Positions 56,387 to 62,000 are shown, numbered from the whole stretch's first letter. The stretch: DNA of 63,126 nucleotides, filler included, from Hyphochytrium catenoides (GCA_900088475.1; 6 parts of 6 records of this genome joined end to end with filler, not necessarily neighbours in it); one strand, 5' to 3'. The notes: a model not told the origin generated them from the letters alone. Numbers and translations: made by a program.

Positions 56387-57534
56387 NNNNNNNNNNNNNN
56401 NNNNNNNNNNNNNNNNNNNNNNNNNNNNNNAAGAAGAGTTACACTAAGAAGACAGAGGAGATTGCACTTACCTGAGAAGATAGAACATAACACTTTAGGC
56501 AGACGACACTTCGTACTGGTAAAGAGCTAATGTCTTTTCAGTTGAGAAAAAGCAACGTGGCAAACAAGTGCTAAGAGCATCTCCACCGGTCAATGCTGGT
56601 GTATTCTATTTCTGGGCTATAGGGTTGTCAACGGCTACGATAACTCGAGCTCTGATTGGTGGGGCTATAGAATCGGCGTTAACCGCTTTAGAAATAGATA
56701 GCCCAATTGTGCCGCTCCACCGGCGATTTCAAGATCACCTTGGTCTATAGCTATCCTCAGTCTTCCTCTCCGACAATTCAGAACTCCCCTCGTTGCTTGC
56801 CCTCTGAAGTGGTCATATGCTTAACTGTGGTATTCGCAGGTATCCTCCACGAGATTTTTGATGCCAGGTCCATCACGAAAATAGGCTAATTTAATCTGAT
56901 ATTCTACCGAAGAAATCTGATTATTGTAATCGAGAATTAGTAAATCGATACATGATATAGAATACACCAGGCCAAAAAGGAGCCGGTACCGGCAGATTCT
57001 GGTGTATTTGGGGGTCGAATACACCAAAATCCGTCTGGTCTATCGCCGGTCTATAATAGACCACGAATAGACCAACCGGTGGAGCAACTTTTTGGTTTGG
57101 GCTATCTAAAATAGAATGGGGTTGTGTCATTTGCACGTTCGACGCTTACAGGAAGCCGGTACCCGCTAGCTGTTGGTGTCAAAATGCGCCGAAAGTTGTG
57201 TCATTCTCGTTTCTGTCCCGGCTGTGTTTACACAGCCGGTCCAGTCAGAGGTTCTCGCCGTTGGCGGCTATAATAGGTGTGCAAACACAGACGGAGCCCA
57301 AGTTGGGTTTCCTGTGTTTGCGCACCCCCGGAAACACCAAAACACATTGATGAAACACCTTACGACGGCTATGAAAGAGCTTGAACAGCAAAGATTCTGT
57401 CGAAGCATGCCTATCCATCGCAGTTCGTAACCAGCACAAAGCTTCATGAAAGGCAGAAAGGTCTTTTCCTTACACAGCAGCAGTGGGCCTTGACAAGAAT
57501 GTAGGTTAAGTGCGTGTCGTACCATCAAGTGAGA

Positions 57535-59413
57535 ATGATGCCAGTAGACGAGAAGGAGGAGGACCTTGATGATGACGTTGGTGCTCCCTGCAGAAAAAGA
57601 AGCGGAAGGGAAGCTGGAGAGTAAGAACAAGATGAAAGTCCTCCGGGTAATAGAAGGGCAAGAAAACTTGAGAAGGGGGAAGGCCACGTGTTTGTTAATG
57701 ATGTGCTCCCGATGATGGCCCACCAACAGGAGGAGGAGCAACTTAGTGACAAAGAGCACAGTCTAAATGGCGACGACGACAGCGTTCGGGGGGAGATGAG
57801 CGAGGAGGAGGAGGTTGAAAGCATGTTGGCTTGCCTTGAGACAACTACGTTCGGTCCTTGTGCTGCAATCGTCGAGAGCACGGTGAATGCTGTCTCTACT
57901 TTGCTGAAGAGCAGCCTCCTCTCAAAGAGGCAACTGCTCTTAGAAAGCTTCTACAGAGAGGAGATCCAAATGTCGGGCCACTCTATCCGCTTAGGAGATG
58001 CACTTGATCACCTTCTTAAGAAGGAGGATCAGCTTGCGGAACTTCTGTATCGAAGGAGCGAAGAAGAACCAGCAGCTCACGACCTGGTCCTTATGGCCTT
58101 AAAAGGGTTGATCGAAGAAGGTTAGTCGACTGAACTTCTCACGTTATCGTTAGCACTTTGGATAGAACTGAGAAGTTGCGTTGTCCACACGTAGAACTGA
58201 GAAGTTGCACTGTCTCCACGTAGATGAAGAGCGCGAGCAGCTTCTGAAGGAAGTACATCTTCGCTATCATGCTCTTCAAGAGTACGCAAGAGAAAGTTAC
58301 GAGTTCTCTATCACATTTTGCAACTCCTTGCGAGAGCAGTCACTCCATAAGAGATGCTCTCTCTTTGAGCTTGTATCTGATGATAGGATGTTGAGGTAGG
58401 ACTTCGATGTGATGCTTTCAGCAGACCGAATGGAAGAGGAACCATTGAGTCTAAGAGGTGGTCTCCATGCATCTGATGCTCCCTCTAGGTATCTTATCGG
58501 CATGGACCTAATGGAGTTTGACAAGCTTTATGGAGTGTCTTCCGAGGCCCTGAGAGATGTATTTCCACGTCTGAAGGAAGACCGGCAAAGTTATGCACCG
58601 CACAGTCATGCGTGGTCCACACTTCGCTTAATTCTCTTTCTCACTCTGCTGCGCCTGAGACACAACCTTCCGCTGAGGGCACTTCAAGGTCTCTCCGGGT
58701 TCACCTTCTCAAACATTGGGAAGCAGACCAACAAGGTAGAGATGGTGTTGATGGAAGTGTTGCGCACATCATATCTATATGCACCCTCCATTGACGAGCT
58801 GATGCTTGCGGGAACAGAATTTTATAGCCGAAATACTTTCCAAGGCCATCGCCACAAGATTTGCATGTGGTACGATTGTACTTACTGCTACATACCTGCT
58901 CCTTGCCATCAGAACATACAGGAGATATATTATTCAGGTTATGTCAAGGCCCACGCTCTCAAGTTATGTATCTTTGTATCGGCAGAAGAAGGGCGGAAAT
59001 GGGTGCATCAAATCTCTTGCACGACTGGCAAGGTGTCTGATGTGAATGGGGCATTTGCTTCACCTATAATGAGGACCTTAAATGGCACTGATCTAGTTAT
59101 TGGTGCGGACAAAGGTCTCAGCGGCTTCGACATCTTCGTCACTCCCTTTAAGGCGTCTGCAGTTTCTGTTGATTGTAAAAAGGTGAGCCAGCCAACAGCC
59201 AGGATAATCAGCGAAGAATGTGCTGCCTATAATAAAGCATTAGGAAAGAAACGTGTAAAAGTGGAGCAGGTTATTGGAGATCTCGTCAAGTGGGCAGCTG
59301 TCAGGGGAACAAGCGATAAACGGCGGGATCACAGTTTAGAGTATGCCGAAGTTAGAATTCAGCTATGCCGAGCCTTAACAAACTTTGTATATCGTCAGCG
59401 ACGGCAAGGGTAA
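57535..59413 (+). CDS. ISL2EU/IS5-like DDE transposase (HTH_Tnp_4 + DDE_Tnp_4), multi-exon, 5' part likely damaged
   Basis: LFLTLLRLRHNL..L HTH, WYDCT (D), YSGYVKAHALK, GKVSD, GADKG (D), YNKALGKKRVKVEQVIG (E). Probable introns ~58121-58223 and ~58396-58488 give DDRMLR|YLIGMDLMEFDKLY. In-frame TAA at ~57621; true start may lie further upstream (~57184). Confidence 0.8.
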
Positions 59414-59473
59414 TCGACTATATTCACGAGCGTCAATATAAATGGCGAAGGAAGCCACGTAGGGGTGCATCCC

Positions 59474-61412
59474 TCACAAGGACGCTTTGGCCCTATCTGT
59501 CTCCGAACCGCCATCAAAGGCTTGTTGTTCAAGAGCTTGAAGAATTGAATACTTTTCCCTAGCCTCCTCCACATTTTTGGTTCCCATCGCTATTTGCGTA
59601 AGAGCTGCCCGTCTACTGTTACGCTCTAGCTGCGCAACAATAGCAGCTCGGGTCTCTCTCTGAACATCCTGTGTTCCTGCCAAATTTTTTGACAGATCTG
59701 TCAATACATCCGCAAGACCATCCGCGCTGTTCCCCAAAGGCCTCAACGATAGTCCTTGCTCTGTTATCGGAGCCACGTTTTCTTTTGTATCGTCGTGAGC
59801 TGACCCCTGGGGCTCTGATAACGGGATTTGGAGATTGGGATCGACGGCAGCCAGGCGTGTTCGGTTGACACACCCTGGTGTGGTCGAGATGGGGGAAGTC
59901 TTCCATCGACAGACCTGATACTTGTGATCTGCCTCCCAAGCCTTCATCGCTTTGGATAACTCCCCTAATATCTGTCTTCCCGTTCTACTTGTAGCTCGGA
60001 TTCCTTCAGAGTCGGGAAATGGATAGGGCTCGTTCATACTAGGTCTGGCGACTGGTCCAGTTTGCTTGACTTCGTTAAGGTGTCGACCCAACCACCGTTC
60101 CTTGGCAGTTCTCTCCCACAGTACTGAGAGTTGACGTTTGTCCAGTGGACAAAGGTCACATCCTGGAATATTCTCTCGATTACCAAGAGTACAGGCGTCG
60201 ATAAACACCCTCCGTGCCAAGCCGTCGTGGTACTGCTCTCCACTCGATGCCTTTTCCGCGAGAAACTTGAAAAAGAGATAGCGAATCTTCATTCCCCTTG
60301 CGCCCGTTAGCTTGAACTGTGGGCTCTCCATGTCCAAGGGTGTAAGACGAGCGGGAGGACAATTCACTTGTTTTTTTACACTGTAGAGTCGGGTCATTGC
60401 TGCTGGGGATAAAGTCTCATCGTCCTCAATCCCCGGACCATCGCTGTCCCTCCTTTCAGGGCCATCAAGCTCCGCATACGGATGATCAAGACCTAAAGCA
60501 AGACACGCTAGATTAGACTTTTTCTAAGATCGTAGAAGCAGTAATGGTGTTCTACCGTAGACTATACATATGATCAGATAAAGCTGGTAAAGACTGCTAG
60601 GGAATGATCCGCTTGCAGCCAGTTTATCTGGCAAGTGCTTGTCTCTTACTAAGGCCATCAGGCCCTCTGCAACATTCTCAGGATCAAACGCCTCTCTAAG
60701 TTCCTCATTCTCCATTGCAAACCTCTTCCACTCCTGTTAGACAAAGTATGTTTGAGTTAGCTGTATCACTTCAAATGGCTGTGAAAAGTAAAGGACCAGT
60801 GCTCCTACATTTTCCAACTTTTCTCTGACCAATACTAGTGTGGCAGCATCCTCAGCATCCACCAGTAGACCCTCTTGCCCCTGACCATACTTTCTAGCCA
60901 AAGTGACAAGGCTGTCAATGATATCGTCATCAGTCTGACATTCATGGCCCAACAGCTCATCAAATAAGTGCCTCTCCTTGACAACCACCTCAGAGAACGC
61001 ACCAGTGATATGCCAAACCCACTCCCTAGTCAACGTCCTTAGAAAAGCTCCTATCATTCCCCTCTCACCAGCACCACTATCGTTACTATCGCTAGTAGGA
61101 GGGCTCTCTTCTTCCCCTCCTCCACCATGATCCAAGGCCTCTCCTATCCTTTCTCACTTGCTGCTGGATGATTATGTCAGGAGAGATCTTCTTCTTCATC
61201 ACTCCCGTCGCTTCACCTTCATCATCATCATTGCTAGTACTGCTGTCGCTCGGCGGTGCAGCTGCAGCGATAAGTTCCACAGCTGCAAGAGAAGTTTGGG
61301 GTGCTGCTGCGCCGTCACCACTACCACCATCATCATAGCGACGGCGTCTTTTTACTGGCGCTGCTAAATTCTTTGCCCCCTCTTCATCTGTGCATTTATG
61401 TTTTTTCTGCAT
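59474..61412 (-). CDS. Second gene of element B, unknown accessory protein (multi-exon, probable frameshift near 61150)
   Basis: 307-aa terminal ORF extends 5' to a TTTAG acceptor at ~60492. Upstream exon-like ORFs 60524-60734 (CTAACAG acceptor), 60737-61135 and 61092-61412 with NLS VKRRRR. C-terminal coiled coil. Confidence 0.6.
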
Positions 61413-62000
61413 CTCTTCTACGTGATGGCGAGCGATGTAGATGAATTAATGATGAGTGATGACTGAAGAATCTCAAAAAATAATTCAATTCAAAAGGAGG
61501 CTATCTGTAGAAGCGGCGCTGTCATGAGGACAAAATACTATCCTAGTCGGACAGTTGATATTCCCTCCATTTTACAACAGGCACAAAGACGCTACAATCT
61601 GGCTGAAACATTTCGAAAAGAACGTTTATTGCATTGAAACCTTTCAGGTGTGTTTTGCAAGACGTGTAAGGAGGGACAGGGAGTGTGCATGTGTAAACCA
61701 AGCCAAGCCTTTTGGTGTAGCTGGGGCCAGAAGCACATTGTGAATGTGTAAGCATCGCAGGTGCAAATGACACAGGCCCAATACACCACCGATAGCCCAC
61801 GGATACACCACCCGGTGGAGATGCTCTAAGTGTCAGACTGGTGACCAGAGAGAACAACTCTGTGCTAATCAACTCTAGACGGAATCTAGGTAACAAGGGA
61901 GAGGAACTTGTCCATCGCCCTCACCCATTGGATGGTGGCGAGAGGAGAGGCAGTCGNNNNNNNNNNNNNNNNNNNNNNNNNNNNNNNNNNNNNNNNNNNN

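Follow-up and report, generated by a model that had tools for sequence, protein, structure and literature searches.

A two-gene PHIS transposon with PIF/Harbinger- and NuwaII-type ends in Hyphochytrium catenoides

We analysed a 63,126-nucleotide (nt) stretch of DNA from Hyphochytrium catenoides (hereafter the window, whose numbering is used for all coordinates) and characterized a transposable element at positions 56575-61826, inside the sequence piece that occupies 56431-61956. The element is 5252 base pairs (bp) long, has a G+C content of 48%, ends in perfect terminal inverted repeats (TIRs) and carries two genes that converge on each other: gene 1 on the plus strand, which encodes a DDE transposase, and gene 2 on the minus strand. 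It is very probably an autonomous cut-and-paste transposon of the PHIS kind, with a PIF/Harbinger- or Nuwa-like build.

Ends and target site of the element

The boundaries of the element are given by four features:

56572-56574, left target-site duplication, TAA; C precedes it at 56571
56575-56589 (+), left TIR, GAGCATCTCCACCGG; 15 bp, no mismatches to the right end
61812-61826 (-), right TIR, the exact reverse complement of GAGCATCTCCACCGG; no mismatches
61827-61829, right target-site duplication, TAA; G follows it at 61830

Matches to the TIR with up to three mismatches occur three times in the sequence, against 0.19 expected by chance from shuffles, the third being an internal site at 56709. 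The first letters of the TIR are GA. From the flanks we infer the pre-insertion site GTGC-TAA-GTGT, so that the 3-bp TWA duplication typical of PIF/Harbinger is present as TAA on both sides and the C-TNA-G target typical of NuwaII as C-TAA-G, each in a single copy. The single copy equally permits a reading with a 5-bp duplication, CTAAG, and a TIR of 14 bp, as in published NuwaII elements, for which the same ambiguity between 3 and 5 bp has been described (PMC4482050). The family of miniature inverted-repeat transposable elements (MITEs) with the same TIR, described below, argues for the 3-bp reading. A literature search for the string GAGCATCTCCACCGG gave no usable match, and the supplement of PMC4482050 contains no TIR sequences.

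Gene models

Gene models were built from three-frame translations and splice-site checks, and all searches and structure predictions were run exon by exon, on separate exons. The two genes, whose stop codons lie 60 bp apart, were resolved as follows:

57712-58120 (+), gene 1 exon 1; acidic, helical N-terminal extension with no Pfam match
58121-58223 (+), gene 1 intron 1; 103 nt, GT..AG
58224-58395 (+), gene 1 exon 2; its end aligns with residues 110-135 of the related protein P0010
58396-58488 (+), gene 1 intron 2; 93 nt, GT..AG
58489-59413 (+), gene 1 exon 3; helix-turn-helix (HTH) and DDE core, stop codon TAA; identified by Pfam, conserved columns, an AlphaFold2 model and fold matches
61412-61158 (-), gene 2 exon 1; ATG at 61412, basic KRRRR cluster and acidic tract
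between exons 1 and 2 (-), gene 2 intron 1; 52 nt (acceptor 61106) or 94 nt (acceptor 61064), GT..AG
61105 (or 61063)-60809 (-), gene 2 exon 2; alternative acceptors
60808-60734 (-), gene 2 intron 2; 75 nt, GT..AG
60733-60595 (-), gene 2 exon 3; between the 75-nt and 102-nt introns
60594-60493 (-), gene 2 intron 3; 102 nt, GT..AG
60492-59474 (-), gene 2 exon 4; the largest, 338 codons plus stop codon TGA; carries a candidate region of three helices and is helical at its C-terminus

The start of gene 1 is uncertain and lies either at 57712 or, if the gene has one extra small intron, at an ATG at 57535. An in-frame TAG at 58397, which has the appearance of a break in gene 1, falls inside intron 2. 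When this intron is removed, the end of exon 2 corresponds to P0010 residues 110-135 and comes directly before the conserved RYMCGMD block that opens exon 3; the exon 2/exon 3 junction thus agrees with uninterrupted relatives, in which the in-frame translation of intron 2 has no counterpart. Because every exon is open, the copy looks intact, and the perfect ends, the perfect duplication and the open reading frames (ORFs) in all exons together suggest that the copy is young and perhaps still active. A tandem duplication (29 bp, 86% identity, 58163-58220) lies within the first intron of gene 1.

An initial annotation of the window had described perfect TIRs, a TAA duplication set in C-TAA-G and two convergent, intron-containing genes; the identical 15-bp repeats, the C and G that flank the two TAA copies and the models with GT..AG introns bear out all three descriptions. 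The transposase motifs that it quoted do all lie in the ORF at 58409-59413, but that ORF opens with 27 codons of intron that happen to be in frame, the exon itself starting at 58489.

Gene 1 encodes an HTH-DDE transposase

Against Pfam, exon 3 of gene 1 matched the whole DDE_Tnp_4 profile (E = 1.2e-10, 42 bits) and gave no other convincing match, and against NCBIfam it gave a weak IS5 match (E = 2e-4); the N-terminal exons returned only noise from Pfam at E ≤ 10. The signature common to all PHIS and IS5 groups, D..K..D..D..P..R-3-E (PMC4122938), is complete in the protein (D129, K158, D184, D207, P219, R255 and E259, with numbering that starts at the first full codon, 58490), and its columns are invariant or nearly so across 13 relatives; D129, D207 and E259 are the predicted catalytic residues.

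An AlphaFold2 model built with 13 relatives reached a mean predicted local distance difference test (pLDDT) score of 86.9 and a predicted template modelling score of 0.86. Residues 102-307 of the model superpose on the DDE cores of piggyBac (Z 9.3), Tn5 (Z 8.5), TnsB (Z 8.0) and retroviral integrases (Z 7-8), and residues 6-94 on the region-4 HTH domains of sigma factors (Z 5.5-6.2). On the basis of these superpositions we describe the gene 1 product as an HTH + DDE protein, the architecture given for PIF/Harbinger transposases (PMC4482050), and the model, a confident one, gives its core the RNase H fold. The HTH_Tnp_4 profile is matched by three of 13 family members, and by the gene 1 protein itself only at E = 0.44. 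Foldseek comparison of the model with the PDB gave no match at E ≤ 0.001, a PDB sequence search with the transposase returned nothing, and PHROGs gave nothing useful for the proteins of the element.

The transposase belongs to a sparse group of eukaryotic proteins

We searched 1.84 billion representatives exhaustively with HMMER and recovered 69 proteins at E ≤ 0.001, of which 24 reached E ≤ 1e-10, with a best identity of 41%. Two were rejected as sums of weak repeat matches: P0005, annotated as a 'putative kinesin' of Diplonema papillatum (E = 5e-47), is a tandem-repeat artefact, and the diplonemid lead was dropped with it; P0022, a bacterial SdrD-like tandem-repeat protein (E = 1e-11), is a false positive. 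Some 67 true transposase relatives remain after their removal. The 30 relatives that were looked up bear no informative names and come from metagenomes, SRA assemblies, an MMETSP transcript, a Tara Oceans gene and the ichthyosporean Pirum gemmata, sources from which we conclude that this transposase branch is eukaryotic, thinly spread and unannotated. P0018, P0024 and P0078 are the relatives in the MMETSP transcriptome, in P. gemmata (EukProt) and in the Tara Oceans data, respectively, and the MMETSP transcript shows expression of one or more relatives in a marine protist.

A word-index protein search with the transposase exon found no match. A profile made from 26 relatives found just three proteins, none of them named. 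Profile searching for related loci identified none in the species genomes of bacteria and archaea, in viral contigs or in metagenome contigs of the JGI.

The maximum-likelihood tree comprises 31 sequences, none of them a labelled PIF, Nuwa, Pangu, ISL2EU or Spy reference. In it, the gene 1 enzyme pairs with P0001 (support of 95 in the Shimodaira-Hasegawa-like approximate likelihood ratio test, SH-aLRT), and the pair falls within an eight-row clade (SH-aLRT 94) that contains the Pirum protein and is itself nested in a 25-row group (SH-aLRT 99). This group leaves out P0076, the sole protein in the tree with THAP, HTH and DDE domains, an architecture that P0076 shares with another distant match, P0067. 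Taken together, the sequence comparisons indicate that the transposase represents a sparse, deeply diverged eukaryotic branch of DDE_Tnp_4 that as yet has no name.

A MITE family uses the same end sequence

A scan of JGI metagenome contigs for CTNAG followed by the TIR identified at least 120 loci (L001-L120). Among the matches listed, 73 of the first 80 loci came from eight related samples, and the MITE-bearing samples were mostly Ga0116226-31, Ga0209208 and Ga0209611, which we take to be associated with peat moss. The contigs are plant-like and eukaryotic, with a G+C content of 38%, and encode F-box/Kelch proteins, an MLKL-type kinase, SARAF and a C78 peptidase. The loci represent an abundant, Tourist-like family of MITEs whose median length is 372 bp and whose 15-16-bp TIR is GAGCATCTCCACCGG(T).

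Identical 3-bp flanks were present in 48 of the 64 distinct MITEs among the matches listed (TTA in 22, TAA in 22, TCA in two and TGA in two). Both outer flanks were C and G in 21 of these 48 pairs, against about 10% by our own estimate, which uses the background C/G frequency with one side fixed by the query. In the other 27 pairs among the matches listed the outer flanks were not C and G, which rules out a 5-bp duplication for the MITE family. Since the same 15-16-bp TIR heads a family of approximately 372-bp MITEs with TTA/TAA duplications, the ends and the duplication of the H. catenoides element are indeed of the Tourist/PIF type, as first proposed from the sequence.

None of the 120 MITE loci held a homologue of the gene 1 or gene 2 protein, no autonomous partner was seen in 944 kilobases (kb) of contig sequence, and Rfam gave no match on ten MITE loci. 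We considered the MITEs as deletion derivatives of the element and rejected this origin, because the two have nothing in common beyond the 15-16-bp TIR. The MITEs are thus users of the same end sequence that did not derive from the element copy.

Gene 2 as a candidate accessory gene

Searches of PHROGs, NCBIfam and the PDB gave no match to gene 2. A low-confidence structural model places three helices at residues 33-112 of a 307-amino-acid ORF, followed by a helical C-terminus, and the nearest neighbours in a protein language model are mostly Myb/SANT-like, Myb_DNA-bind_4/MADF, DUF6818 and NAM-associated clusters. Myb/SANT proteins are the standard partners in PIF/Harbinger and Nuwa elements (PMC4482050), and one Harbinger element from a moss is listed with a NAM-associated second ORF (Table S1 of PMC4482050). 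By analogy with this architecture, which supplies most of the weight, gene 2 somewhat more probably than otherwise encodes a diverged partner of the Myb/trihelix type. The KRRRR cluster in exon 1 could be a nuclear localisation signal.

Subterminal repeats and other non-coding features

Both ends of the element carry short repeats inside the TIRs:

56590-57340, left subterminal region; dense short repeats TGGTGTAT, TGGTCTAT and TGGGCTAT in both orientations, located by k-mer positions
61713-61811, right subterminal region; the same short repeats as on the left

Chance would account for 3.25 copies of TGGTGTAT and its one-mismatch variants, and 13 were found. Of these, 12 fall in the roughly 770 bp next to the left end or the 115 bp next to the right end, where both orientations occur. 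The segments 57098-57150 and 61747-61799 are inverted copies of each other (75% complementary). We infer that the TGGTGTAT, TGGTCTAT and TGGGCTAT arrays are candidate binding sites for the transposase or an accessory protein.

A TIR-like pair lies further inside the left subterminal region: 56709-56723 and 57076-57090 match the true TIR at 12 and 11 of 15 positions, respectively, and face each other as a left and a right end. The outer edges of the pair are 382 bp apart, about the size of a MITE, and its flanks (ATT/TTT) form no clean duplication; the pair may mark an ancient nested MITE from a related family, or else consist of internal binding-site repeats. The stretch that mirrors the right subterminal region (57098-57150) sits just after it. 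Upstream of the transposase gene are two hairpin-forming inverted repeats, 57213-57244 (15-nt arms, 2-nt loop) and 57276-57326 (15-nt arms, 21-nt loop).

Discussion

The two-ORF layout and the TWA and C-TNA-G targets are published features of PIF/Harbinger and NuwaII elements (PMC4482050), and we class the element described here as a new family of this known kind, a PHIS transposon whose ends, target and layout are of PIF/Harbinger/NuwaII type. With PIF/Harbinger it shares the 3-bp TWA duplication, a short TIR with an initial G, two ORFs, an HTH + DDE_Tnp_4 transposase, a length not far from the mean given for such elements, about 4.1 kb (PMC4482050), and a TIR identical to that of an approximately 372-bp Tourist-like MITE family. 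It differs from PIF/Harbinger in that its transposase reaches only 42 bits against the DDE_Tnp_4 profile, in that no PIF, HARBI1 or ALP1 protein is named among the relatives looked up, and in a partner gene that lacks a recognisable Myb/SANT domain. That it comes from an undescribed or poorly described family, as the initial annotation had suggested, is plausible.

Several observations weigh against its assignment as an autonomous element of this build. What is said of the duplication, target preference, mobility and splice sites rests on one copy and on analogy. No named HARBI1, ALP1 or plant PIF protein occurs among the checked matches at E ≤ 0.001, so the enzyme is not typical of the canonical PIF/Harbinger clade. 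Pfam at E ≤ 10 detected no Myb/SANT, MADF or other domain in any exon of gene 2, only noise, and a search of its large exon, by word index only, found no relative and no host-type homologue; the apparent orphan status of gene 2 reflects that word search alone. The single-sequence fold of gene 2 is unreliable (pLDDT 40.7), and the language-model neighbours, whose scores of 0.80-0.84 lie in a range where chance matches are common, are the sole hint to its nature.

Among described groups, NuwaII is defined by its C-TNA-G target and has TIRs of 13-46 bp that mostly start with GG (PMC4482050). The element could be a member of the described Nuwa lineage, of the NuwaII type, in which a C-TNA-G target goes together with a DDE enzyme and a partner protein of the Myb/SANT kind. 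Its insertion in C-TAA-G, its two ORFs, a TIR within the reported length range and the ambiguity between 3 and 5 bp are all features of NuwaII (Han et al. 2015). The identical-TIR MITEs among the matches listed point the same way, with TNA duplications that include TCA and TGA and with C..G flanks in 21 of 48 pairs, as do families from oomycetes, diatoms and red algae that make 3-bp duplications and were placed near Nuwa (Kojima 2025), to which the element may be related. However, its TIR starts with GA whereas most NuwaII TIRs start with GG, no Myb/SANT partner is demonstrable in gene 2 by HMM search, and none of the 30 relatives looked up came from the annotated animal or plant genomes in which Nuwa was described; we consider membership of the Nuwa lineage rather unlikely. 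Zhang et al. are said to have reported in 2001 that maize PIF prefers C..TTA..G; if so, the target does not discriminate between the two groups. Pangu/Harbinger2 elements resemble the present one in having two ORFs, the second without a known motif, and in their occurrence in algae and heterokonts (Han et al. 2015; Kojima 2025), but Pangu makes ANT duplications, like bacterial IS5 (PMC4482050), where the element has TAA. NuwaI likewise differs in its CWG duplication (PMC4482050), and Spy in making no duplication, inserting at AAA-TTT and having a single ORF (PMC4122938), compared with TAA and two ORFs here.

The initial annotation had proposed an ISL2EU-type transposase acting on Tourist/PIF-type ends. 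Its background statements, that ISL2EU makes AT duplications and pairs with YqaJ and that NuwaII targets CTNAG, agree with PMC4482050, and the ADKG and YSGY.K.H.LK motifs do resemble IS5/ISL2-like enzymes; the weak NCBIfam IS5 match and the THAP + HTH + DDE architecture of the distant matches P0067 and P0076 also speak for the proposal. Yet the quoted motifs belong to the signature of all PHIS and IS5 groups (DDE_Tnp_4; PMC4122938), and it is this general PHIS catalytic signature that the element shares with ISL2EU. ISL2EU is characterized by AT duplications in A-AT-T, a THAP-HTH-DDE transposase, a YqaJ partner and TIRs starting with GG (PMC4482050), and the element has none of the four: Pfam found THAP in no gene 1 exon and in none of 13 close relatives, and YqaJ in no gene 2 exon; the duplication is TAA; and the TIR does not start with GG. 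Since the motifs are general, THAP is missing and the 25-row group that holds the gene 1 enzyme (SH-aLRT 99) excludes the THAP-bearing P0076, a hybrid of PIF ends and an ISL2EU enzyme is highly improbable. The accompanying observation that the second gene has no recognisable YqaJ or Myb domain holds at the level of profile hidden Markov models (HMMs) for every exon. Gene 2 might instead be a captured or unrelated host gene, a passenger in a one-protein transposon, for which the lack of a domain, homologue or confident fold speaks. We regard this as improbable: gene 2 lies inside the TIRs, is intact across four exons including one of 338 codons, and occupies the position of the second ORF in most autonomous PIF/Harbinger, Nuwa and Pangu elements (PMC4482050); moreover, the word search gave no host-type homologue either, and the weak neighbours of gene 2 are known Harbinger-partner families, Myb/SANT-like and NAM-associated (Table S1 of PMC4482050).

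In an autonomous PHIS transposon of PIF/Harbinger- or Nuwa-like build, gene 2 would encode the accessory protein usual for such elements. The gene 2 product, the HTH domain of the transposase, or both would bind the subterminal repeats, and the gene 2 product would recruit the transposase to the element, carry it into the nucleus, or both. The transposase would then cut at the TIRs, and the element would reinsert at TNA within C..G sites by way of 3-bp staggered cuts. Both proteins would presumably be required, a need reported for PIF/Harbinger transposition (10.64898/2026.05.26.728016). A bolder interpretation, which we hold only tentatively, is that the element is the first full-length, two-gene member of an undescribed deep PHIS lineage, thinly spread across protists, that combines PIF-type ends and targets with an accessory protein other than Myb/SANT and a different way of recruiting the transposase. 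Such a lineage would be separate from canonical PIF/Harbinger, Nuwa, Pangu/Harbinger2/HarbingerS, PHISTA, ISL2EU and Spy.

An intact autonomous copy with perfect ends is directly testable, by exposing a marked element to the transposase, alone or together with the gene 2 product. If it is true that gene 2 is not Myb-like, its product would be a second kind of accessory protein for PIF/Harbinger-type transposition. In other respects the element is an annotation item for the repeat library of the host genome. The element provides a genomic anchor, with ends, target and partner gene, for a transposase branch that otherwise consists of anonymous fragments from metagenomes and protist transcriptomes, and it could reveal which enzyme moves Tourist-like MITEs that bear GAGCATCTCCACCGG ends.

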